This document shows, in pieces, positions 5,601 to 64,000 of a DNA stretch of 64,000 bases. The stretch spans positions 16,244,001 to 16,308,000 of the forward strand of contig OZ260663.1 of the NCBI GenBank assembly GCA_965285935.1. The letters run 5' to 3'. Every line of letters begins with the position of its first letter. Position 1 is the stretch's first letter. The notes under the pieces are model-generated. The model did no database searches and was not told the DNA's origin. It was given only the letters and a program-made list of their open reading frames with translations. Made by a program: the position numbers and the translations under genes. The stretch is from Ophelia neglecta (Eukaryota).

Positions 5601-7988
5601 CACTTGATTCATATTTATTCACAGGTTACATTGCAGTTGCAAATACAATTTAACCTGTGACTGCTAAAAGCCACTACCATTCCCTAATCATATAGCTGCA
5701 CCTCAAGATGCCTTAAGTCTTATGATTCAAAAGCAGACTTTGCAGGGTCATGCAATGAACAAGTTCAGCCCCAGCATTAACAATAATTCGCAATCTTGTT
5801 GCCATATATTTGAGCACGTCTCCTTTTTTCCTCTACTTGCCATCTGTCAGATGTGATCTTGTCTGTATAATTGGCAAGCCGAAGGCTGTGGCAAATGTTA
5901 ATACATTACGATCTTACGCTATAAGTGTTAGAGAAGGAATGAGATTATGGCCATAAATGTGAATTAATTCCAAGAAAATAATACCAGTCGAGTACTCTAA
6001 GACACGCAGTGCTCAACATTAAGCATTGCTTACTACACCATCTTGGTAAAACACGATTTTTTTAAAGAGACTGTCCATTCATCTGTAAAACAGGCTTAAA
6101 TTTGGAACGTGTCTCAACATGGGCGACTTAGGGTATACCGATGAAGACCATTGCGCTTTTGTGTCTAAAGTAGGCTGTGAAAGAAGCTATTTAAAACCAG
6201 CCACATCATGTATATGTACAACTTGCTTGATAAGAAAAAATATCAACGGATTTTATTTGAAACACTACAGCGTATATCTTTTCACTTGCAGAATTAAACC
6301 AAAATCGTCCTACCAAGGTTTGAATTGACCATTATTCACCAAGAATGCATAAATCACATCAGACAGCATATACTCCAATAAAACCTATCCGATAAAAGCA
6401 ACTGACAATAAACTATCGTAGTAATATGCAAAAATTGGCTTATCAAAACGACTCCAAAACTGCAAGTGACTTATTCTCAATTTACATTGAAAAAAAATCT
6501 TCCATAGAATATCCTCTATCAGCCATGACACTGTCTGCGTCCACGCTGGTTCTATGGTCTGATGCTATAGATTATGGTACATGCAGGAAGAAGAAGATCA
6601 ATGGCCATGTCCCACCGATGTTGAATAGTAGGACGGGTTTATGATGACAAGAAATAATCTATGTGTCCTTTTGAGTATAAAATCACGTGTGTGTTGTGCA
6701 TATACTTTAAAGGCACCTAGTTCATCACATTGTAAATATAATCCGAATTTTTTGACATTTACAGTGGTACTATGTGTATGTTATTCCATGTGTTTAAACG
6801 AAATTAGCATAACATACACGAATACTTGCAATGCAGACTGGAACCAACAGGCTGTGTTGGTTGAAATAACCAGTAGTGATTGTTACTATTAATATACGAA
6901 AACACATTATCTTGCCTCAGTTATTTGAGGAATTTGTTTTTCCCTGATGCATAACCCATAGGATGATAGACAGAAACACAAGGAGGATGGGTAAATTAAT
7001 GTATATCATTTAGTATTTTGTAGACGGCCACGTCGCAAACCGCCACTAGAACGTTGCCGAAAGACATGTTCTGATTACTCTACAAGGGTGTCCCAGATCA
7101 CTCCTGAGTGCGAATTTTCAGAAGCGAACCCCAAAACCAACATGTTAAATTGAATCAACCACTGTGTATATTTGAACAAAAAGGAAGAGACTCCGTGCCA
7201 ATATGAATTGGATCCCACGGAAATTGGCCCTTAATTCGTCTCCTGTGTTTATAGAATAGGCTTGTTGACACTCGTGTGAAATAAAGTGAAAGTGGTAGCC
7301 TTTTTCAAATACCGCCCTACATAGATTTTGACATTTAAATGCTTAATATATCAGATCTGACGCGTGTCTTGTGCCTTGTGTTCATACAATGAAGTAAATT
7401 TCAATAACTAATGCTAAATCACGTGCACTGAAAATTGACTTCGAACAATGTGTATTGGCCAGTTTGCACAAGTTTTTCACATGAGAAAACTAAAAGCAAT
7501 GCTTTCAGAACAGTGTTACCACCAGTACTTCCCATTCAGTTGATTCAATTAACACTAAGAGTACTTATTGGAAGTGAGCAATTGGACGCTAGTTTTAAAC
7601 ACCATTCAGCCTAGTCGCAGGTCCAATGGATCCTCTTGATGAAATATGTAAGTTCTAGTCGCCTCAATAAGTTAGTTGCCTATATGTTAGATGTGTGAAT
7701 TTAGGAATGCGCCGATCTGGTCTATACTCAATGATCCCTTACTTTAAAGTGCATGATAATTATTATTGGCCATGGCTTTAATAGAGCCATTAACTAAATT
7801 GCATTTATAACATACCTGCGGACTTTCTTTCATCGTATCACCGTGTCATTTCGCATGTCATGTCGTATGTGATCTAGCCAAAGCAGATACAGCAATTAAA
7901 TTATATTTATAGCGGCAACTAAAAGCTGTGGGTCTTAGCGCTAACAAACATTAGCATGCACCTTCTGATTGACCATTACTCGTGTATA

Positions 7989-8165
7989 CAGTGAAACCTG
8001 TGCATTAAGACCACCCAAGGAACTGGAAATGGTTGTCTGATTTTGGAGGTGGTCGGTTTAGACTGGTTATTTCACATTAGAAGTAAACAGCATGGTCCTT
8101 ATTTTAGTGGTCTGAATTGACAGGTGGTCTGATAATAGAGGTTGTCTTTAAGACAGGTTCCACTG
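7989..8165 (+). mobile_element. Family A MITE (pogo/Tc1-mariner-like, ~178 bp)
   Basis: TA|CAGTGAAACCTG...CAGGTTCCACTG|TA; internal GACCACC/GGTGGTC repeats; same sequence recurs about 10 times in the window. Confidence 0.85.
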
Positions 8166-11100
8166 TATATGCTCTTTGCAACTCGGGTGGCCATGCACAT
8201 TCTGACAGCGTGTCTAGTGTGCGTCGGCGACCTGAGAAAATTAAAGGCATCAGAGAAATTATAGCCTTGCCGTCATCATTCATCATACATTTTAGTTTTA
8301 AATCAGTCTCTTTTCTCCCCAAGACAACAGTTAAGGGTCGATAACATTATCAATACATCAGCCGTAGAACTCTCCTATGAGCGAGGATTATATATAAGTA
8401 CGCTTTGGGATCGTTAAAAGTCAACCATTCTTTTTTTGTAATAGATTCTTGTAGTGAGACGCTTGGTCTCATTTAATAGCTTTGCTGTTGTACGAGGGGG
8501 GGAGGGGGAGGTGGGGGGTGGGGGGTCGGAGGGGGTCGGAGGGGGGGGGGACCCATGGCCCGGTTATTGGAAGAGGTCAAAAGTTTCATGATTAGTTTTG
8601 TCAATATGATTAGCTGGTAAACACATTTATCGGTCTATATTGGTCTAAGTTCGAGTCCAGCTTCCACAATGTCCACTTAGTAAGAGTGAAGAGTAAATAA
8701 GCAATTAATCCAGATTTAAAGGTTAAAAACACTTCTAAAAACCGGGAGCTGGAGATTACTAACCCTGAAGGTCATTCTGACAAAACGCAGGAGCGATAGC
8801 CCTTAAATGATTGACTACTTTAAGGAGTCATAGCCTGGCACTCAAAAGTGGAAGTTTATTTCTCCGGAGAATGTTATTTACGATCTAGGCGATCATCCCT
8901 GTCAAGGTTATGTATAACGAGTCCGTCGCTGGAGCTGTAAGCTGGAATATTTTTGATGGTGGCTGCAGGTCGTAGAAGCTGTTGTTCGGTTCTACTTATA
9001 CGCAAATCTAGGATATGAATAATGATCATCTTCGTCTTTCTGTTTATCCCGTTCATAAATCTAGCTTCTTTCTCAATTTTTCTTAATATTTTTATTAAAA
9101 ATGTTTTCGGCGAAGTTTTATGTATGCATATTGGTTGACTGTATCTTTTGGTAAGATGGGAAGGTCTTGTGGTGAGCGGTTCTTATCGAGAAGAAACAAA
9201 AAGGGAAAAATATGAATTGTTAAGCTCTATTGCTTTCAGTTCTGAGGACGCAAGAAAAATAGCAGCAAGTGTCTCCCATCCCCTGCCAAGTCAGTCAATG
9301 GCGAGTGACAAGCCGCATTTGTCACACGGTTGAATTTATTCTACTTAAACTTGTGGTTCTAGTCACCGAGTACATTTCACATTCTTGTGGAGGAGTTGGA
9401 AATAGCATATAAAATTACCTTGTCATTGATACCGTTCAACACCATCAGACTTCAGAAGCAGACTTCAAGTCTGTCAGTTAATATGAACAGTAGCGATATG
9501 GCTGATTCCTTTGTATTCACACTGACACTTTAAGCAATGAAACGGATGCAGGCCTCCTCCTGACCACTCTTCCTTTCTTTCACAAGCGTTTTTAAGAGTT
9601 CATTTTCTGATGGGAGCGTGTTGTTCTTGAAACCCGTCTGTTACTATTAGATCCGCGCCAACTGTGGCGTGTGCATAGTGAGCGCCAATTTTAGGGGCGA
9701 CTGACTGAAGTGCCGTGTGTGAACACAGTACACCAGTTACCACTTGGCTGCAGTGTGGCAAAGATATTGAAAGCAATCAGATCTGTCACTAAAATTGCCT
9801 ATAGGACTATGCGTGTTAACTCCTGTGATGAGAGGACTGCCTCGTTTCACATTTAAGGTACTTTATTTGTTTCTTATACCACCTTGCCTGCCGGGACAAA
9901 AGCTTCATTATATTTATTATCTGCATTTAAACATTTGATTATGTAGCCTTAACAGTGCCGGGAATATCTTACTACACGATGAATACTTTTATTGTTAAAA
10001 TCAATATACTTACTACTTGTACCAAGCTTTTGAACATTTGTGATTTTGCAGTGAGCGATAATGTAGACATATATTAGAATGTGTTCAATATGAATGTTAT
10101 GCCAATATGATTTTACATTGACAATTGACAATGACACGAATAATGGGAAACTCGGTGTAGTCAGTAATAGTTTGTGAGCGTGTGGTAGTGATTAGGCCTT
10201 CACAAGTTGGTCCCGGCCTCAGGCATGGCCGTTTTCTCCGCACTTTGTTCTCTTACATTCGGACGCTGGTAGAATCTTTGATGGAAAGTCACACAGGGTC
10301 ATGTTGTGTTTACCCGTGGCCAATTACCGACAAACTCACCCATTTATCGCTCGGGTGTTGGATACATGTTACACGTTAGGCCAAATGGGCAACATGCTGC
10401 CGAACAGTAGATTTAACTCGCTCAGCATTCATCTGCACAAACGAGAACAACACGTATCGACGGGTTGGTGCCACAATTCGATTTACACAACCGATCCCTG
10501 CCGTGAATACGCCTGCAGAGTAGATCTGGCCCATTTCAAACACACTAAAGCATCTATACCATGTGCGGTCAGTTAGGCTAAACATTTCTGGAATTTGCGA
10601 TGGTAATTCCGAACAAGAATAACATAGATATTGTTTATCCTCGCTGCAGACAAAACCGGCAAAGGCCAATGGCAATCTCGCGGAATCAATACGGCGTGAC
10701 TGTGAAATGGGAGAACCATGGATCAGTATACTGTGGAATAGTGAAATCAGGGGTGAAAAGATGAGTCACTGCACTTGTCTATCATTGGCAAAAACCAGGG
10801 CGGATCCCAACCGGTGAATTGGCGAATAATGGTGAGCTCATCCACAGTACTCGATAGTTAGAATCTCTCGTCGGTAGGGTTACCTTCACCTCGAAAAATT
10901 GTTTTTAACGAACCTGAATATTTCATTTTATAACCAAGTTGTCAGGCCATAAATGAGACTTATCTTATATGTTTAGTATTTATCAGACATGGAATGAGCT
11001 ATTATGCTAAACGAATGACGTTTGCCCAGTTTGTGTCACTGTTCAATGCAAGCCTAATCCCAGCATAAGTGACTCAAGCAGCTGATTGTGACCACGTTTC

Positions 11101-16125: not shown

Positions 16126-16476
16126 ATGGACGTAGAAGCTAAGTGGTGAGGAAGCAAGAAGAAAACCGGATTATGGTTAAAAACGGCCAGTAGATGGTCG
16201 TTTAGTAGACGGGATTATCGGTGTAAATTACGTTTGGATACCTAGTGAAGTGCATGTGTACAACGTGAATAACAACAACGGGTAGATTTAGTGAATTATA
16301 CATATAAACAATCTGAGAAGGGATTCGTTACGGGTATTCCTGTGATATTATGGACACGATACGGATATGACCAGAAATAAAATTGTATATGATCTTTCAA
16401 GGTTGGATAAGATGACCGTGGATTGTGTGGTATATTTGTAAGAGAAGGTCAGCCGAAGGTTAGGCACGTTTCGGAT

Positions 16477-18489
16477 ATGGGGCGCCTTAAGTTTGTCTTG
16501 GTGTTTATCGCCAAGATGGCAATCCTTAGCCAAGCCTTCTCATGTGATTTCCCCCTATTTATGCAAACGAATGGAACCCAGCGCGATTGGCGCATGCGCA
16601 TCAGAGATCAATACACGGAGTTCAGTTTGCAAATATTTGTGGAGAAAAACCTTATGCGCACAGTGTCGTCTGACGTAAGCAGCACGTCACACACGCGCGT
16701 CTGTCTCCAAGGTTATGGAGAGAACAAGTTCCTAGTCGCACACGAGGAGTCCGGACAACAGCGAAATCGTTACACGTGTGTCCAGTTCTTGCAGCGCACC
16801 AAAAATGTTGTGCAGATAAAAGAGGCGCCAGTCAACCAAAAAATGGATAGATCTTTATGTGGTGATGACGCCCTGCAGCTTAACCATTGGCTGATGATTG
16901 ACAAGACACACATCGTCACCGACGAAGCCATATGCGCGCTACAGGGTGGATTCAGTATCAGAATATTTGACAAAGTGCGTCACAAAGGGATTTGCGATGG
17001 TTATAAAGGAGAAACCCGGATGGAAAGTGAGTGCGTCAAGGGGGACGGCTTATTGTTCTACTTCAGGCACCAAAATTGTGTTCCGGAGGATTTGTACATG
17101 TATAGTACGCAGCGGACCATATGTCTGGCCAATTGGAAAGAAGGCATTCACAACTTCATCCTCCTGCGTCACGACAGGTTTCATTATATGTGGATAGTGC
17201 GTTACCCCTCATCGCTTAGAGAGAGTTTCGTGGCTTATCTTTTTAAGGATCTGGTTGCAGACCCAAGCGACCAGATCGATGGAACCCGTAACTATCTTCG
17301 CCTGGACACTGTTCGCGACACGCCCCGGCCAGTTGGGTCACTTTGTGTGGACGATTACGAAGTGTGCAGCGTCTGGCGGGAGCCCTGCACATCGGGTCCA
17401 ACTATGGCCTTGACCTGTCCCCGTACGTGCGGTGTTTGCAATGCCTCGCGACCTTTGGTTTGCAGATTTGGGGATAAATTCCGTGGAACTTGGTTTGACG
17501 CGGCGCACGTAAACAATCTCGCTCTTACTGTTAATACCAGCACCATGGAAGTACGAGGTGAAGTCACAGAGCGATTTCATTGTATCCGATGGGATCAGAC
17601 TGACAAACCAAGTGTTAAGTTTGCCAAAGATGAGATGCTAGTCACTGAATTTTTTAACGGCTGCCGTCCAAGATATACATGTGTGCGATTTTTACAAAAA
17701 TCTAGTTCTGTAATGTTTATGAAACTGAGCCAGAGTTTGACCTGGCCCTTCACACAGACTGTACAGGAGCCTATCGACTGCTCCAAGTTCAACTTCGACC
17801 ACGAGGAAAACAGTGTGCTCCCAAACCGGTTTAGACACAGATATTTTAAATTATTATACAGTGCGAATTCAAACCACCCGGTGCATTGTGGTCTCCCCGA
17901 GGATTTGAAAAACTACGTGGTGACCTTCCGTGACGGCACTGATTGTCTGAGTACCGTAACAGAGACGTATAATAAACAAGAGATTGTGGTTAACCTCTCC
18001 AACTGTACTACTAACCCTCTGGGATCATCAACATTCACGTGTCTGGAATCCTCCAAACTTCTACCCGCCACTGACATGCTAGTAGTTACACGGACATCCC
18101 GACAGCCTTATCAAATATACTGTTGGGTGTTCCCAAAGAGGCCCAGGACTACTTTCTACATCCTGGCGGGTTCACAGTGCAATGAGGCTGCGCGAAGACG
18201 CATCCGCAAAGATAGACTAGTTCCCTTGGCGTTTTTCAGTAAACACCGGCGGAGCATTATACATGAAGAAGTGACGAAATACTTAACCACAACTCTCCCT
18301 AGCCAGCCTCATATTTCAGATAACGAGGCCGAGGTAGAGGTCACTCGAAATGCTAAAAATAGAACTGTTGTCATGGGCAACTTAACAGAAACTGCGAATG
18401 ATGAAATTAATCCTAGTCCCTTTGTTATCGTTGCAGCAGTAATATTTTTCGCCGTTTTTCAAATTCCTTGCATATGTAAATCTTCGTAA
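16477..18489 (+). CDS. Intronless 670-aa Cys-rich predicted type-I membrane protein with ShKT domain and DUF7042/7043/7044-like modules
   Basis: Longest ORF in the window. First in-frame ATG at 16477 gives signal peptide MGRLKFVLVFIAKMAILSQAFS|C. Modules start CDFPLFMQ..W, CALQGGFSI..CLANWKEG, CRFGDKFRGTW and CGLP. ShKT motif CVDDYEVC-x6-C-x9-CPRTCGVC at 17344-17439. A Ser/Thr/Glu stalk precedes the TM segment PFVIVAAVIFFAVFQIP and tail CICKSS*. The DUF assignment is by motif resemblance only. Confidence 0.9.
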   Translation: MGRLKFVLVFIAKMAILSQAFSCDFPLFMQTNGTQRDWRMRIRDQYTEFSLQIFVEKNLMRTVSSDVSSTSHTRVCLQGYGENKFLVAHEESGQQRNRYTCVQFLQRTKNVVQIKEAPVNQKMDRSLCGDDALQLNHWLMIDKTHIVTDEAICALQGGFSIRIFDKVRHKGICDGYKGETRMESECVKGDGLLFYFRHQNCVPEDLYMYSTQRTICLANWKEGIHNFILLRHDRFHYMWIVRYPSSLRESFVAYLFKDLVADPSDQIDGTRNYLRLDTVRDTPRPVGSLCVDDYEVCSVWREPCTSGPTMALTCPRTCGVCNASRPLVCRFGDKFRGTWFDAAHVNNLALTVNTSTMEVRGEVTERFHCIRWDQTDKPSVKFAKDEMLVTEFFNGCRPRYTCVRFLQKSSSVMFMKLSQSLTWPFTQTVQEPIDCSKFNFDHEENSVLPNRFRHRYFKLLYSANSNHPVHCGLPEDLKNYVVTFRDGTDCLSTVTETYNKQEIVVNLSNCTTNPLGSSTFTCLESSKLLPATDMLVVTRTSRQPYQIYCWVFPKRPRTTFYILAGSQCNEAARRRIRKDRLVPLAFFSKHRRSIIHEEVTKYLTTTLPSQPHISDNEAEVEVTRNAKNRTVVMGNLTETANDEINPSPFVIVAAVIFFAVFQIPCICKSS

Positions 18490-41326: not shown

Positions 41327-42200
41327 ATGAACAAAGCTTTAACAGTACCTCAAAAATGCATTTAGTTATTTTCTGAAACACCTCTTAGTTAAAGATAAAC
41401 AGAGTATTATGTTTCACATTTTGGATGAATGTGTTGGTTGGCCGTGACTGTTGGATGAGTGGTGAGTTGTGTTAAATGTCACAAGATGGGGTTTGCATGA
41501 TTTTAGTGATGGTGATTGTAGTGAAGGTGATTGTAGTGATGGTGACTGTAGTGATGGTGATTGTAGTGATGGTGACTGTAGCGATGGTGATTGATTGTCT
41601 AGATGATTGAAGTAAATGTGTTCAATGTGTGGATGATTGCAGTGGTTGTGTATGAATGTGTTGCTGATTGAAATGAACAAAGGTTAAAGATTACCTCAAC
41701 AATGCATTTTGTTATTTTCTGAAACACCTCTTAGTTAAAGATAAACAGAGTATTATGTTTTACATTATGGATTAATGTGTTGGTTGGCCGTGACTGTTGG
41801 ATGAGTGGTGATTGTGTTAAATGTCACAAGATGGGGTTTGCATAATTTAAGTGATGGTGATTGTAGTGAAGGTGATTGTAGTGATGGTGATTGTAGTGAT
41901 GGTGATTGTAGTGATGGTGATTGTAGTGAAGGTGATTGTAGTGATGGTGATTTTAGTGATGGTGATTGTAATGATGGTGATTGTAACGATGGCGATTTTT
42001 GTGATGGTGATTGTACTGATGGTGATTGTAGTGATGGTGATTGTAGTGATGGTGATTGTTGCGATGGTGATTGTTGCGGTGGTGATTGTTTGTCAAGATG
42101 ATTGAAATAAATGTGTTAAATGTGTGAATGATTGAATAGATAGTGTATGAATGTCTGGATAATTGAAGTGAATGTGTTTAGTGTGTGGATGATTGCAGTG
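41327..42200. repeat. Tandem duplication of a ~345-bp unit containing a 15-bp minisatellite (AGTGATGGTGATTGT)n
   Basis: Units start ~41327 and ~41672 with near-identical ~175-bp heads; minisatellite ~6 copies in unit 1 (41505-41595) and ~16 in unit 2 (41850-42090). Confidence 0.9.
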
Positions 42201-48907: not shown

Positions 48908-49827
48908 TATTATATTTATATATACCCTATAGAATATTATAATTTATTCGTAGAACTGTGAGAAATTTGGCACAATTCTATTTTAAAGTCCCTTTGGGTG
49001 GGCCCATCCCTTTTAAAGCAGCCAAAACATGACACGAAGAGCTGCTCCTATTCTACATGTTAGATCGGTAAAGATGCGTTAAAAGACGGTCCATCCTAAT
49101 ATAAACGGACTAACCTTGGTGAAAATTGGAATATATTTAATTACTATGTATAGCAATGCCTTAAAAGTAATCAGTTTTGCTTTTATCACCATTTTAGGCA
49201 AGTGTAAGCATTTGGGCCTAAATAAACTAACGGGGCGATTGGATTAGGCGAAAACTATTTTGGTCAAAATTTATTTTTTTCGATTTATTTGCCATTACTG
49301 CCAATTCAAAAATATTGTGACCAAACAAACAATAAAATTGGAGAGGAGAGGAAGGGAATTAAGATTGATTTTAAAGAGATTTTTTTGCTCTTCCCGCCAT
49401 TTCAGGTATTATCAACTCGTTAAGTTAAAAGAACTTAGCGGGCTGGTGGGTGGGATTCATATCTTATTGAAGGATCAGTAGATTGTTTGTGTGAGTGTGT
49501 GTGTGTGGGGGGGGGGGGATAATAATGGGAATTTTTTGGTGCAATGCATCAATATCACCAAAAGCTGCTATTTAAATATAGGCAGAGTTAATCTTTTTAA
49601 TTTTTACTTTTTCATGAATGTATTTTCCTTCATATATGTTTACTATACTTTTGAATCGGTGGAGTGCTTGCCTTTCTAAGCACCACATTTCTCAGTGCAC
49701 ATGTAGTGCTAGACATGCTTCTCCAATCACTGGTCAGCCCAGTTTAACTTGTGTCTATGTTTATGCCACTTAAACCAAATTACTCTATATTTACTTTCTG
49801 TATTACAGTACAATCTGAGACAATTCA

Positions 49828-51178
49828 ATGGAATTGGCCAAGTACTATTACAGCCGGGTGACTAAGGACACCCCGTCCAGAGAGCGCCTCGCCCTGTCTG
49901 AGGCTCTGGTGACTGACCTGACCGGGCAGTTAGACCGAGGTGTGGAGTACGACCGGGACGCCGTGGCGGAGATCGCTCGGGTCATGCTGAGTGTGAACCT
50001 CGACTCCCTGCACTCCACCCCCGAGCTCAGGGACTGGCTCCTGTCCCAGGAGGTCCGGGATCTGGTGTGGAGGCTCTCTGCCCAGGAGGGGACCGCCTCG
50101 GCCGTCCTCCAGGGCATGTTTGACGGCGTGGCTGAGAGGAGTGTGGGGTTCGATGATATGTGGACGTGGAGTACCGTGTTAGTCAGCTCCTGGTTTCTCG
50201 GGACAGACGGCTCCGTGGTGCCGACATCTCCCGGGTTTTTACTGCTACTTTTCGCATTCTGCTACCGATGTGGCTCAAGACAGGCAGATTACTGTGGACA
50301 ACGCCTTATGAATATTCCCTCCTCAGACGAGCGGATGCTCCCTCTGGTGACAAGGACTCTCCATACAGAGACCTGGGAGTCTCTGGTACAGGGGAACAGT
50401 GCGGGCGACACGGTTCTCCACATAGCCGCGTCCCTAACCCGCCTTCCTCGGGTCACCAGAACCCTGCTGTACCAGACAGACATAGATGTTAATGTGAGGG
50501 GTAACACTGGTAAGACTCCCCTCACACGTCTCATTGGGGGCTCGTCCGTGCTGTACAGTATACACCTCCCCCCAGCCGAGGTCCTACTAGAATACCCGGA
50601 GACCGACGTCAGTCTGTTAGACGACCGGGACAAGACCGTGTTACACTATTGTCTGGACCATCTCGGAGACTCCCCGGCGTCGGTCACAGTGGCTCTGGCA
50701 TTAATTACATTAATATGTCAACATTCCTCGGTCACCCCCGACATGATAAGCAGAGCGCTGGAGAGCCTGTTAGAGTGGGAGGTCTCCCCAGGACTGCGGG
50801 ACCAGTGTTATGGTGTTATAGTAAACCTCGCCACCAACAATAACTATGATATCAACCGTCCAGTGAGAGGCGGGATGACAGCATGCCACCTGGCGGCCAC
50901 ACAGGGGCATTACGCTATTGTGGAAAAGTTCATGGACATAACAGGGCTTGACCCGAACACGCCGGACAGTCTGGGTAACACTGTCCTCTACTACGCATGC
51001 GCCAATTTCCCACCAGAGTCCGTCATGTCTGTAATAGACCACCCAACGGCGACCTGGGACTTCACCCACAAAAACAAAGCAGACCAGACCATCCTGGACT
51101 ATTACAGCCGGTTTCCGGACAACAAGAAAGATCCCACATTATTAGGGTACATTGAGAAATGCTTGGAAGACACAAAAG
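49828..51178 (+). CDS. ANK-caspase coding exon 1: helical N-terminus plus ~6 ankyrin repeats (450 aa)
   Basis: Motifs GDTVLHIAA, DVNVRGNTGKTPL, DDRDKTVLHYCL, GGMTACHLAATQGHYAIVEKFM, DPNTPDSLGNTVLYYAC, KNKADQTILDY; acceptor at 49808; donor AAG|GTAAGG at 51178. Confidence 0.9.
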
Positions 51179-54100
51179 GTAAGGTTGATCAGTATTTTCA
51201 CTGACCAGGAGTAATGTTAAGACCAATATGTCAATGTTTATTACCAAAACCGGCTTCCAGAAATCCGGATTAGCAAGTTAAGGACAATTAAGCACTTGAT
51301 TCCTGATTTTAATCCGAGTCATGAGTTAATACCGCTTCTAGAAATCGGGCCCTGGGTGATGAAAGGCGAGGTAAAGCAAGCCTGGCAATGAGATGATTGT
51401 AATAGTATGAGCTGCAATTGGGTATGGTCGGATTGGGTAGCTTATTTAGTTCGTTGGGTAGACGGAGAGGCAGGTAGGGAATGGGGTCGTGAGAGGTGGT
51501 GTTTGGTGGGATGGGTTATGGTGGTATGGGCCCTAAGCTGGTAGTGACAGGTAGACGGGGAGGCCGATAGGGAATGGGATGGGATGTGGTGGCTTGGGCT
51601 CTAAATCATTGGACTCTAAGAGGTGGTATAAGTTGTCTCGGTTGTAGTGGAATTGCTGATATTAGGAAAATTGTCTTTGGACCTTTGCTGATATTAGCCG
51701 CCTGTCCTTCGCTATTTGAAACAGTTTTCTACTAGAAAAATAGTACAAAATAATATTATTCACCGTTGACTCTTTGCTTTTGTCGGATTCCAGGCGTACG
51801 ATGGGTTCCCTTCCGACCTAGTGATCACATTGATGTCAAATGTTCTACCGCTGAACACTATGCGGACAGAGCAGACGACTGGGTACGTGATACGACTCTT
51901 AAAGGTGTTTAATTCAGCTAACAGAGAATGCAATGTACATTGAGTAGGTCTGATAATACCGTTTGATATATATGAAAAACCAGTGGTGGATACCCGTCAG
52001 ACAAAGACATTGACCAAGAATAGTCCATAAAATAGTTACGAACTCTTCAAGAACCACCAGTCGCTGCACGAGACAAATACAGACGTATACAGGTCTGATA
52101 ACGATACATGATATGTACTATGACATATACAGGTTCAAGCCAAATTGGATTATTGGTTTAAATTGCAAATAAAGTAACCATAAAACAAAACCGTGCACTT
52201 AACACCTGTTCTTAAACAGATAGCACCTTGGAATAAGGGACACCAATCAATTGAGGACAAGTATTTCGGATCTCATCTTTTTAATGCTCGTGAAAACTAA
52301 AGAGTAGTAAAAAGGGCCACATAGGAAAGATGAGACCTACTCGCTCACTTGGCACTTCCAACTTACTGTAATAGCTTTTTATGCAGTTGAACCTGACATT
52401 TCAGAGACGAGTAGTTTCTATTCTTTATTGATGAAGCACAAGGGCATACCTTAGTTGTGATGGAGCGGTATTGATTCCAATTTTGCAGACATATGAGATG
52501 GGTCATGCGTACAAGGGTAAGGCTGGTATTATAGCGATCCACACCTTCTCCGGTAACATGAACAACCTACTTGGCTATAAGCAGGATACGGAGGACCTGG
52601 CGGCCTTGTGGGACGGCCTCGGGTTCCAGGTGGTCGTCCCTGAAAGACGGAACCCGGAAGGAGGCTGTCTTACCGCCGAGGTATGAGTAAAGAGATATAG
52701 GTTTTTGGGTAATACCTCCACAAATAATTCTCTTTTTATTATATGTTCAATATGTTTATTATATGTTCAAATTAACAAAATGTAGTGCATCAGAAATATG
52801 ACGCTTAGTTATTAAGCAGTGGTGGATCCAGGATTTCAGGAGGGGGGGGGGGGCAAATTTTCCAAGGTTGACAAGGTCAATGTCTTTTTGCCCCCCGCCC
52901 CCCTCCTAAATCCGCCACTGTTAATATAATAATGATAATGGGTAAAGTTATGAACTCGTTCCCTTATATGAGTTATCATTGGATCGCGCCTCTAGGAGAT
53001 ACAGTCAGCGGTAAAGCAATTCGCCAGAGAAATCCTCGAGCAAAGTGACCAGTGTGCCGTGCTCTGTATCCTGAGCCATGGAGGCGAGGGTTTTCTGTAC
53101 GGCAGTGATGGTCACACGGCAGACACAAACCAGCTACTCCAGGAACTGGACAATATCAATTGTATTCAGATGGCGGGAAAACCGAAGGTCGTCATCATTC
53201 AGGCGTGTCAGGGAGGTAAGTTTTCAGATGGCGAACAGTAGGAGAGGTATTTGTCATCCATTTGTGTTAAAGATAACCCGTGTTGCCCCGGAATTCAAGC
53301 TAATTAGATATACATTATGCCATCTTTTGGAATAGCCGTTTTTTCACAAAACTGGGCACTACTTTCCAAAAAATAATCATTGCACACTCAGCCGGTATCT
53401 ACTGACTACCGTTGCCAGGTAACCCCACTTTCGTAATACGACCTGGATTAATTCAAATTAAAGTCGCCTTCAACACTAAGTATATCAACTCGCAGCACAT
53501 GCATTTGAAAAGATAACTTTGGACTGTGTTATGAGAATAAGGACAGCCTGTCTAATGGACTACAGCATACTTTTAACACAGGCGATCATAAAAGGTTTAC
53601 TCAGCTCAAGTTTAGTAAAAAAAATACAAAACTTTAATTCGAATATTTGCAGCTTTACTTAATTTGCAAATCGTTTGAAGGCCTCTGCACTTTGCAACAT
53701 ATATGTACTGTACTATGTAAGCCAGTGAGTGCTCTATGTATCCCTTAGCTACCTGATTTGCCTTATAATACATACATTGGGTTCAATGTACGTGTGTATG
53801 TTTACTGGGCGGATTTCGTTCTGTGTCATATGTTCTATACGAGTAACCAAAATGTCAAAGCAAAAAGGCAGATACATCTTTTGTGAAATTAGCTTGTTGA
53901 TTTTTACTTTCAACGAGGAACAGCGCACGTACACTGTTAAAAATAATGGAACAAGCACCATAGGATAATCAGAAATTACCAACTTATTACCTTCATGCTG
54001 GAAACATTATTTGATTGAATTACTCCATAAGACTAGCTGCTGGCTACCTGCTACCCTGGAGCTAGCGTACTACCACCTAGGTTTTAGCTCAACTTTTCCT

Positions 54101-55396
54101 AGCCCCTACCGTGGTGCTACATACCTAACGCCTAGCTGCTGCTTAACCACCACCTAGCTGCTACAAACCGGCTATCTAGAAAAAACGGAAGTGGATACCC
54201 GGCAGATAACACCAGATCATAAAATCTATAATAGGCCATTGATCGGTCTGAAATAATCTGAAACTCACAGTTCGGTAATACTGGTTCTGTAATACCTAAC
54301 TAGCTGTTACCTAGGAGCTATCAGTGTCGTCTGGTAACAAGGCAGCTGTTGTGATTTGGAATATTTCGACTGAGAAAGTAGCTCCCTGACTGTTTTCAAT
54401 GGCCAATGGCGACACATTGATATATTTACCATTTCAGACTGGGCCGATCACGGTGTCCACTTGCGTGCAGGCAGTAACCCTCTCCCCCAGGCCGCGGCTG
54501 GAGGCTATTCAGAAACACATCTACCGTCCGTCTCAGACACTATCGTCTGTACTCCTTCAAGTAGAGGTAAATAATCATTTATTAAAAGAAGGAAGTGTTA
54601 TGAAAGAGTGACATAAATAACATCATGTTATAAAAAGCGAAAGAATACCATGCGGAAAAAAGCAAGTAGTTTTGTTACGAATAATTATCAAACATTTTCC
54701 CCCGGACGGTTACCCTTGTGAACCTTAGCTGTTAAAATATTGGTCATTTTTAACATTCTTTTTTACGGTTAACCATTTTTAGGTTATGTGTCGTTTGTAA
54801 GCGATAGGAGCTTTTACATTAGAACACTTGTAAAGATTTTCGCTCAATTCGCTTGTACAGAAGATGTGTACAGATTGCTTACAATGGTAAGATAGTTTGG
54901 TTTTACTTCTATTCATGTTCTTCTACCGTGTAAAAAAAGCAGAGTCTATCCGGCAGACATGCCTAATCACGAATAACCCATCAGTTTGGTCCGAACTTGT
55001 ATAGAAACCTCCAGCTGCAGGTTGCCAATATCAGTCCCCAGTACCTTAGCTTTAAATAAGCTTGCAAAGGGACAACTTAGGAATTCTTATTATAAATGTT
55101 TCAGTTTGAATGTTAATAAGAGGCTCTAGAAGTAAATAGTGTTTTACTCAAAATTTTTCCTGGAATAAAAATAATTTTCATGCAATGTTATTTCGGCTAC
55201 ACAAATATTTGATAATTTGTGGACATTTTCGCAGGTAAATCGAGAGGTCAGTAAAGATACAGTGCGTGCAATTACACCTGGGTCTACGATTCCAACGGAC
55301 CACAAACAGATGCCACACTTCGGCAGCACATTGAGGAACACGCTGTACTTCTTCCCGTGTCCTGGAGGTAAGGACGGAACCGACTGGCAAACATGA
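49828..55396 (+). CDS. Ankyrin-repeat/caspase (peptidase C14A) fusion gene, ~748 aa (756 aa with the alternative last exon)
   Basis: join(49828..51178,51794..51882,52489..52680,52996..53215,54438..54566,54783..54886,55235..55396). All introns are GT-AG with compatible phases (1,0,0,1,1,0) and no internal stop. Contains ANK repeats, then YEM..KG..F..D..L..LGFQV, ILSHG, GKPKVVIIQACQG, LPSVSD..GYVSF, VNREV and KQMP..STLRNTLYFFP. Confidence 0.85.
51794..51882 (+). CDS. ANK-caspase coding exon 2 (linker GVRWVPFRPSDHIDVKCSTAEHYADRADDW)
   Basis: Acceptor TTTGCTTTTGTCGGATTCCAG, donor TGG|GTACGT; 89 nt converts phase 1 to phase 0, exactly as needed to join the flanking exons. Confidence 0.75.
52489..52680 (+). 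CDS. ANK-caspase coding exon 3 (start of large subunit)
   Basis: TTTTGCAG|ACA...GAG|GTATGA; TYEMGHAYKGKAGIIAIHTFSGNMNNLLGYKQDTEDLAALWDGLGFQVVVP...LTAE. Confidence 0.88.
52817..52920 (-). mobile_element. Family B MITE, internally deleted, in a caspase intron
   Basis: TTAAG|CAGTGGTGGATCC...AATCCGCCACTG|TTAAT; 104 bp. Confidence 0.8.
52996..53215 (+). CDS. ANK-caspase coding exon 4 (catalytic His and Cys)
   Basis: CTCTAG|GAG...GGAG|GTAAGT; EIQSAVKQFARE..CAVLCILSHGGEGFLYGSDG..NCIQMAGKPKVVIIQACQG; His codon 53077-53079, Cys codon 53206-53208. Confidence 0.92.
54438..54566 (+). CDS. ANK-caspase coding exon 5 (intersubunit linker, start of small subunit)
   Basis: ATTTCAG|AC...AGAG|GTAAAT; DWADHGVHLRAGSNPLPQAAAGGYSETHLPSVSDTIVCTPSSRG. 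Confidence 0.85.
54783..54886 (+). CDS. ANK-caspase coding exon 6
   Basis: CATTTTTAG|GT...ATG|GTAAGA; GYVSFVSDRSFYIRTLVKIFAQFACTEDVYRLLTM. Confidence 0.88.
55235..55396 (+). CDS. ANK-caspase coding exon 7 (stop at 55394-55396, or donor after 55367)
   Basis: TTTTCGCAG|GTA; VNREVSKDTVRAITPGSTIPTDHKQMPHFGSTLRNTLYFFPCPG(GKDGTDWQT*); internal GAG|GTAAGG donor at 55367/55368. Confidence 0.85.
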   Translation, partial: VNREVSKDTVRAITPGSTIPTDHKQMPHFGSTLRNTLYFFPCPGGKDGTDWQT

Positions 55397-59823: not shown

Positions 59824-63685
<3,862 letters not shown>

Positions 63686-64000
63686 CTTAAAAAGTGAGTA
63701 GCGATTAAACTCTGTACTTTGTAAGCTTAGTGAGTAGATACAACATAAAAGGAAAGCACAGAAATTCATTCCCTAGCGATCCCCCCCCCCACCCTGGTTA
63801 GTTTGATATGCTCCTTCCATGATGAAAAAGAGTCAACCAAGACACCAAGAAATTGTGTCTCTCCGACCTGGAGACTTATTCATTTTTAATAATTACACCA
63901 CTTTTCCAAAAACCATAAAGTTTGTCTTCTTTACATTGAGGGTTAGCTTCTTTATTTCAAGCCAACGAATTTCGGAATTAAGTTGAGAAACAATATCATT

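Follow-up and report, generated by a model that had tools for sequence, protein, structure and literature searches.

A predicted single gene of Ophelia neglecta joins an ankyrin-repeat prodomain to a caspase-family protease lacking both S1 arginines

The window analysed here is a 64,000-nucleotide stretch of the Ophelia neglecta genome (assembly GCA_965285935.1, contig OZ260663.1, positions 16,244,001 to 16,308,000; about 38% G+C), which lies on contig C5 of the 762-Mb assembly and from whose first letter the positions below are counted. Positions 49828-55396 of its forward strand very probably represent one intact seven-exon gene, for which we predict a product of 748 amino acids (aa) that joins an ankyrin-repeat prodomain, standing in place of the usual CARD or DED, to a protease domain of the caspase family. 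It belongs to a lineage-specific family with no fewer than 34 ankyrin-caspase members in the genome. Its protease domain has kept the catalytic residues and lost both arginines of the S1 pocket; because the pocket has lost its basic character, the enzyme would probably cut after a residue other than aspartate. We assign a probability of roughly 0.7 to this explanation as a whole, that is to the gene, its family, the altered S1 pocket and the mechanism proposed below taken together.

The original prediction, which had been made from the sequence alone, held that a 458-aa ankyrin open reading frame (ORF) has a strong donor just before its stop and is joined in frame, by way of an 89-nt exon, to five caspase exons, giving an ORF of about 750 aa, and each of these elements was recovered. 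Seven exons (1351, 89, 192, 220, 129, 104 and 162 nt) separated by six introns, every border of which reads GT..AG, add up to 2247 nt, corresponding to 748 codons free of an internal stop and a terminal TGA. The three junctions that had been named, 51178-51794, 51882-52489 and 52680-52996, are all exact by their splice-site letters. Exon 1 (49828-51178) carries the ATG and the complete 450-aa prodomain, composed of an N-terminal helical cap (~aa 1-85) and an ankyrin solenoid (~aa 87-450). It leaves the 458-aa ORF (49828-51204, TGA at 51202-51204) at the donor AAAAG/GTAAGG (51178/51179), 26 nt ahead of the TGA, and these 26 nt, an unconserved tail of the ORF, form the beginning of intron 1 (51179-51793). 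The bridging exon 2 (51794-51882; acceptor ...TTCCAG/GCG at 51794, donor TGG/GTACGT at 51882/51883) was assigned to the 30-aa linker between prodomain and protease by phase arithmetic and by homologous 28-aa stretches in three paralogous loci (L033, L034 and L053); it restores the frame (1351 + 89 = 1440 nt) and is required for it. The large subunit starts in exon 3 (52489-52680; acceptor TTTGCAG/ACA at 52489, donor GAG/GTATGA at 52680/52681), which matches positions 1-43 of the Pfam profile Peptidase_C14, and the catalytic core lies in exon 4 (52996-53215; acceptor CTCTAG/GAG at 52996). Exon 5 (54438-54566), collinear with residues 326-379 of an intronless paralogous copy and aligned to the linker region of caspase-8, comprises the intersubunit linker and the start of the small subunit, which continues in exon 6 (54783-54886; HMMER alignment to caspase-8). 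Exon 7 (55235-55396), aligned to the C-terminus of caspase-8, encodes the C-terminal strand (KQMPHFGSTLRNTLYFFP) and the tail CPGGKDGTDW before the TGA at 55394-55396. The G+C content is 0.51-0.57 in six of the seven exons, 0.37 in exon 6 and 0.30-0.44 in the introns. An in-frame TGA (49816-49818) is located 12 nt 5' of the ATG, and the 16 full-length paralogues that were aligned all share the start methionine; a CARD or DED ahead of the ankyrin exon is therefore precluded. Intron 3 harbours a short palindrome (52818-52925) with terminal inverted repeats, CAGTGG.GGATCCAGGA, that flank G-run and C-run cores; its summed contig depth of 7,000-11,000 versus 20-30 in the surroundings, together with many loose ends, characterizes it as a very high-copy repeat resembling a miniature inverted-repeat transposable element.

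A close paralogue has left two intronless copies, L033 (C1:20.93 Mb, L033:3037-5136, minus strand) and L034 (C1:20.78 Mb, L034:2611-4709, minus strand), which bear directly on the question whether the ankyrin and the caspase parts belong to one transcript. In one uninterrupted open frame each (451 and 476 aa), the copies span the final ankyrin repeats, the bridge, a complete caspase and the family C-terminal tail. Both are 5'-truncated at ~aa 34, L033 is disabled by a TGA and L034 by a frameshift, and the two, situated ~150 kb apart, are 97-98% identical in their caspase part. The loss of introns, the 5' truncation and the disabling mutations suggest a processed pseudogene with a later duplication; neither a poly(A) tract nor a target-site duplication was evident next to the stop codon. 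A reverse-transcriptase-like ORF (L033:1212-2009, minus strand) is found near L033. When the intronless frame was compared with the window by tblastn, it aligned as seven collinear segments bounded by the predicted splice sites, and its joins 186/187 and 249/250 fall at 51882/52489 and 52680/52996. Because every junction matches a splice site predicted in the window, the two copies serve as fossil complementary DNAs (cDNAs).

The arrangement is kept well beyond these copies. Downstream of 34 of the 40 ankyrin-exon homologues in the genome, which are 38-52% and in some cases 23-27% identical, a homologue of caspase exon 4 is present on the same strand (limit <15 kb, observed distance 0.3-11 kb); the paralogues L045 and L053 have the same exon order as the window gene, and on contig L055 of a further assembly (ENA, ERZ25069296) an ankyrin ORF has homologues of exons 3-7 within 0.7 kb downstream. 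Some 8 kb downstream of the latter gene, a gene with a TRAF-type MATH domain was noted (L055:14721-15067, plus strand). The separate stop of the 458-aa ORF and a methionine within exon 3 would also suit two adjacent genes, in which an ankyrin-only unit terminates at the TGA 51202-51204, a separate promoter drives a short-prodomain caspase, and the in-frame join is a coincidence or a gene-model chimera; unusual prodomains may be prediction chimeras according to the authors of a study on such caspases (PMC11463336). Two separate genes are hardly credible, however, in view of the intronless copies, which hold ankyrin end, bridge and caspase in a single frame, and of a linkage preserved at 38-52% identity and in another assembly. 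Moreover, the similarity between paralogues ends at the donor (aa 444-445) and not at the stop codon of the 458-aa ORF, allelic variants are denser in the 26-nt ORF tail (3) than in the 1351-nt exon (18), and neither AATAAA nor ATTAAA occurs in intron 1. The view that this is one gene in which an ankyrin prodomain replaces CARD or DED, already put forward in the original prediction, is upheld by the frame, the intronless copies, the linkage in 34 of 40 cases, the other assembly and the purifying selection described next.

The allelic variants listed for the exons comprise 16 synonymous changes on 528 sites and 13 non-synonymous ones on 1716 (binomial p 2e-4), equivalent to a ratio of non-synonymous to synonymous polymorphism (pN/pS) of ~0.25. 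In comparison with the closest paralogues, the caspase exons display a ratio of non-synonymous to synonymous divergence (dN/dS) of 0.18-0.22 at a dS of 0.5-0.9, and the protease part is under purifying selection. These values also bear on the possibility that the fusion gene is real and that the copy in the window is a silent or decaying, unexpressed relic of the family. While the family does yield dead copies, such as L033 with its TGA, L034 with its frameshift and several ankyrin fragments with stops, a relic would hardly be expected to show 748 open codons, six canonical introns, an allelic pN/pS of this size, a caspase dN/dS of ~0.2 at such synonymous distances and retained His, Cys and Gln residues. 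We consider a silent relic very unlikely and an intact, constrained ankyrin-caspase gene the better description of the locus.

Pfam profiles searched against exon 1 returned Ank_4, Ank_2, Ank_5 and Ank (E 6.5e-14 to 6.6e-9) and no DED match. Although only two to three ankyrin repeats are detected in exon 1 in this way, the structural model contains far more. From an alignment of 17 paralogous exons, AlphaFold2 folded the 450 residues into one all-helical domain with a predicted local distance difference test score (pLDDT) of 94.2 and a predicted template modelling score (pTM) of 0.88, so that the part which the original prediction had read as ankyrin emerged as a confident ankyrin solenoid. 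Among the top 50 entries of a structural comparison with VIA-align, nearly all were ankyrin-repeat domains (Z 12-18), the best being the ANK domain of MIB1 with a Z of 17.8 across 287 residues, covering model residues 87-450; a Z below ~13 is common among helical repeats, and the top entries exceed this value and cover residues 87-450. Foldseek matched DARPins and ankyrins at a probability of 1.0. According to the model, the prodomain is an ankyrin solenoid of ~10 repeats preceded by an 85-residue helical cap.

For the protease part, domain searches were run exon by exon, and the natural intronless paralogue was used as a contiguous stand-in for the joined protein. With a Pfam cut-off of 21.4 bits for Peptidase_C14, exon 4 alone scored 54.4 bits (E 1.9e-14) and exon 3 17.7 bits, while the intronless paralogue reached 118 bits over profile positions 2-233. 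Residues 181-439 of this paralogue, with which exons 3-7 of the window are collinear, align with residues 4-260 of caspase-8. The catalytic dyad is present, with the His of an SHG motif at 53077-53079 and the Cys of QACQG (53200-53214) at 53206-53208, and His, Gln and Cys are invariant in alignment A3. The S1 pocket has been remodelled. Its first arginine (Arg179 in caspase-1 numbering) is replaced by Leu (codon 52567-52569), the context being MNN-L-LGY instead of MNN-R-SGT (alignment A2), and its second (Arg341 in caspase-1 numbering) by Val (codon 54797-54799), where HMMER places vsfv opposite VSYR of caspase-8, as is also seen in alignments A2 and A3. The loop next to the second site is two residues shorter and has lost its GSW motif (HMMER and MAFFT alignments), and the S1 glutamine (Gln283 in caspase-1) is retained. 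Arginine occupied both sites in 29 of 29 comparator caspases, whereas it was found at the first site in none of the 11 exon-3 matches among the paralogues, and relatives in the other assembly lack both arginines as well. No caspase-type xExD site was found in the intersubunit linker, although Asp residues do directly follow QACQG. The C-terminal tail FFPCP-G-DG-DW (window 55340-55393), which comes after the last strand, is specific to the family and is kept at the homologous ends of L033, L039-L053 and L054, down to 38% identity, and in the other assembly. By sequence, the window protein thus qualifies as a member of the caspase family and probably shares its fold, and would not be an Asp-specific caspase.

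These substitutions leave room for an expressed protein that is no sensor-protease at all, either a FLIP-like pseudo-caspase or decoy pairing with canonical caspases, or a protease that is merely localised by its arm. Both Asp-binding arginines are gone, the 341 loop is shortened with loss of GSW, and the linker has no caspase-type xExD site, all of which would fit a decoy. On the other hand, His, Cys and the oxyanion/S1 Gln are kept in every paralogue that was read, whereas decoys such as cFLIP lose them, and the protease exons are under strong purifying selection. We judge such a role to be unlikely and favour a catalytically competent protease with altered specificity.

The family is organised to a large extent in tandem arrays, located at 4.3-5.3 and 12.15-12.40 Mb of C5 and at 127.9, 139.8-139.9 and 142.9-143.0 Mb of C1. 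The gene in the window is solitary and old, its ankyrin exon being separated from every other by a dS of at least 1, and its caspase exons are of the QACQG type that it has in common with L042, L045 and L053. Arm and protease differ in their rates of evolution: young ankyrin exons have a dN/dS of 0.6-1.2, as against 0.18-0.33 for the caspase exons in these pairs of genes. They also differ in their histories. In one pair (genes A and C), dS amounts to 0.056 for the ankyrin exon and 1.19 for the caspase exons, and throughout the C5 array at 4.3-5.3 Mb (L003-L012, L039-L046) near-identical ankyrin exons (dS 0.05-0.1) are found on caspase exons with a dS >1. Three old caspase types, QACAG, QACSG and QACQG, carry the exchanged exons. 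Because the synonymous histories of the two parts are discordant, the ankyrin arm appears to have been exchanged or converted between genes with these three protease types, and the C5 array points to exon-level gene conversion or shuffling via intron 1. The nine close paralogues compared vary chiefly at individual hypervariable columns in the stretch from residue 110 to 280. At one position of the C5 array (L035:3082-5202, minus strand; C5:4.898 Mb), a run of N separates a paralogous ankyrin exon from a low-complexity, proline-rich frame.

The recruitment of initiator caspases is normally set by death-fold domains. In the mechanism that we propose, the ankyrin arm would fill the role that CARD and DED have elsewhere by binding a partner, either self or foreign; this binding would cluster the molecules, and two protease domains would meet and switch on, as in other initiator caspases. 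The size of the family, its tandem arrays and the diversifying arm would fit a recognition-effector role related to immunity or conflict. The original prediction had gone on to assume that the arm senses a ligand and thereby drives dimerisation or releases autoinhibition, which we infer to be plausible from the confident solenoid, from an arm that evolves far faster than the protease and from the discrete hypervariable sites. A fixed autoinhibitory docking of the arm onto the protease seems less likely, because near-identical arms are paired with three divergent protease types. A more far-reaching scenario is an animal recognition-effector array of dozens of tandem genes, each combining an exchangeable and quickly diversifying ankyrin reader with a protease of non-acidic P1 preference, sensing a different pathogen or self ligand and firing a proteolytic, non-canonical signal for death or immunity without apoptosome, death-inducing signalling complex (DISC) or inflammasome adaptors. 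We offer this as a speculation that is rather improbable in its full form; if true, the array would amount to a counterpart of NLR-caspase systems within a single polypeptide.

Several points weigh against the explanation given here. Between the window gene and the paralogue behind the fossil cDNAs, identity is only 44-48% for the ankyrin part and ~70-80% for the caspase exons, and the splicing of the window gene is inferred through homology of the exon structure. Only three sequencing runs of the organism were found, all from one sample, and these consist of genomic contigs that cover introns and contain no splice joints; two Logan contigs (L036 and L037, ERR14113986) are relatives of the ankyrin exon only and convey no junction information. 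Transcription from an internal promoter could yield a short caspase that begins at the methionine of exon 3. The loss of both S1 arginines might have left a weak enzyme or turned the protein into a decoy. Relaxed constraint could also account for the dN/dS of about 1 that young ankyrin exons show. We hold the reading of the arm as a recruitment or sensor module only tentatively, at somewhat less than even odds.

Apart from the ankyrin-caspase gene, the window contains a single-exon gene at 16423-18489 (plus strand) whose product, secreted or membrane-bound, has DUF7043, DUF7044 and ShK domains. Its best named relatives are from the annelids Capitella teleta (50%) and Lamellibrachia satsuma; on this evidence the host would be a lophotrochozoan, probably an annelid, while Atlas look-alikes lean to molluscs. 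Two arrays of 15-nt tandem repeats with 6.4 and 16 copies (41498-41593 and 41850-42089; 90% matches), which on one strand read as GDCSD-type repeats, are flanked by arrays of 30 and 61 nt. An ORF at 63482-63769 (minus strand) resembles what we take to be the exon at the junction of propeptide and mature enzyme in a cathepsin-L-like cysteine protease.

The placement of the family among caspases was assessed with a maximum-likelihood tree of 33 rows (LG+G4) accompanied by approximately unbiased (AU) tests. A phylogeny of the C14 domain had been suggested as a check together with the original prediction, and here it grouped the family with the long-prodomain caspases carrying CARD, DED or ANK against the short ones (95/97) and placed it, on a long stem branch (1.58), beside the CARD caspases as sister group (95/95). 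A sisterhood with DED caspases was not rejected (AU test, p 0.083), nor was a single clade with three other proteins combining ANK and C14 (p 0.066), which is absent from the free tree; in a mixture-model tree of 81 rows, the family falls into an open polytomy. By this placement the family would consist of initiator-type caspases. The earlier use of QACQG as a mark of caspase-8/10 did not hold, given that paralogues read QACAG, QACSG or QTCQG and that the tree sets the family beside CARD caspases without rejecting DED sisterhood. Word-indexed searches of public proteins yielded only one Haliotis protein, 24% identical, for the ankyrin exon, and only one caecilian caspase-8 for the intronless copy; an exhaustive HMMER search returned exon-sized fragments and distant caspases and no close full-length relative. 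Ten long-prodomain matches considered as candidates for an Ank+C14 architecture all turned out to have CARD, DED or tandem C14 domains. A protein of 770 aa (P0103) with a 'GT4-conflict' glycosyltransferase domain and a C-terminal Peptidase_C14 was met in passing and represents an unrelated, unusual caspase architecture.

Among solved structures, the catalytic domain of human caspase-8 (PDB 6px9, 3h11 and 4jj7) is the best sequence relative (E 6e-26, ~31% over 259 residues) and has QACQG and the C-terminal KQMP...LRKKL..F motif in common with the window protein, but it follows tandem DEDs instead of an ankyrin solenoid and has Arg260 and Arg413 where the window protein has Leu and Val. The top full-length matches are lophotrochozoan CARD caspases (caspase-2-like, for example P0009 of Potamilus streckersoni; ~36% identity), which form the sister group in the reduced tree and possess an FFPG-type C-terminal tail; they differ in their CARD prodomain and in keeping both S1 arginines. 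Gastropod caspase-STAND-ankyrin proteins (P0004 of Haliotis rufescens, P0034 of Batillaria attramentaria) likewise unite Peptidase_C14 and ankyrin repeats in one NLR-like protein and presumably combine recognition with an effector, although at 1900-2000 aa, with an nSTAND3 NTPase, ~27 canonical repeats and another domain order they are built differently from the window protein, which has no NTPase. A jellyfish protein also unites ANK and C14, and a compact ANK-C14 protein of 677 aa (P0148) keeps both S1 arginines and stands outside the window family in the free tree. With cFLIP, pseudo-caspases and the paracaspase MALT1, the window protein would share a caspase fold with altered or absent Asp specificity, and these proteins serve signalling rather than classical apoptosis. 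In contrast to cFLIP, in which the catalytic Cys and His are lost, the window protein retains both, and while MALT1 owes its specificity for Arg to acidic S1 residues, the replacements in the window protein are hydrophobic.

Whether the architecture had been described before was left open in the original prediction, and the answer is that it had, in flatworms and in one annelid (PMC11463336). 'ANK caspases' were defined in 2024 (Genome Biol Evol; PMC11463336) as monophyletic in parasitic flatworms, first seen in Schistosoma, with a single member in the annelid Alitta virens that was judged convergent and possibly a prediction artefact, and with none reported across 23 molluscs; beyond this study, our literature search did not find the concept. 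The architecture itself is therefore already published and not categorically new. The locus described here and its intronless relatives argue that a genuine fusion, one that exists in the mRNA, occurs in a second lineage, where it has expanded to dozens of genes whose recognition arm and protease evolve as separable modules, and where the protease seems to have abandoned Asp recognition yet kept its catalytic residues. This makes the family a testable system for how new caspase activation platforms arise and for whether animal caspases can evolve non-Asp specificity. In the published ANK caspases, as in the present family, an ankyrin prodomain replaces CARD or DED on p20/p10, and they are regarded as initiator-like, with independent origins proposed (PMC11463336). 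They occur, however, as one or few per species, as opposed to at least 34 copies in tandem arrays here, where the complete prodomain moreover resides on one 1.35-kb exon and both S1 arginines have been lost, a comparison made on the published descriptions. What is new in relation to these systems is the size of the family and the loss of both S1 arginines.

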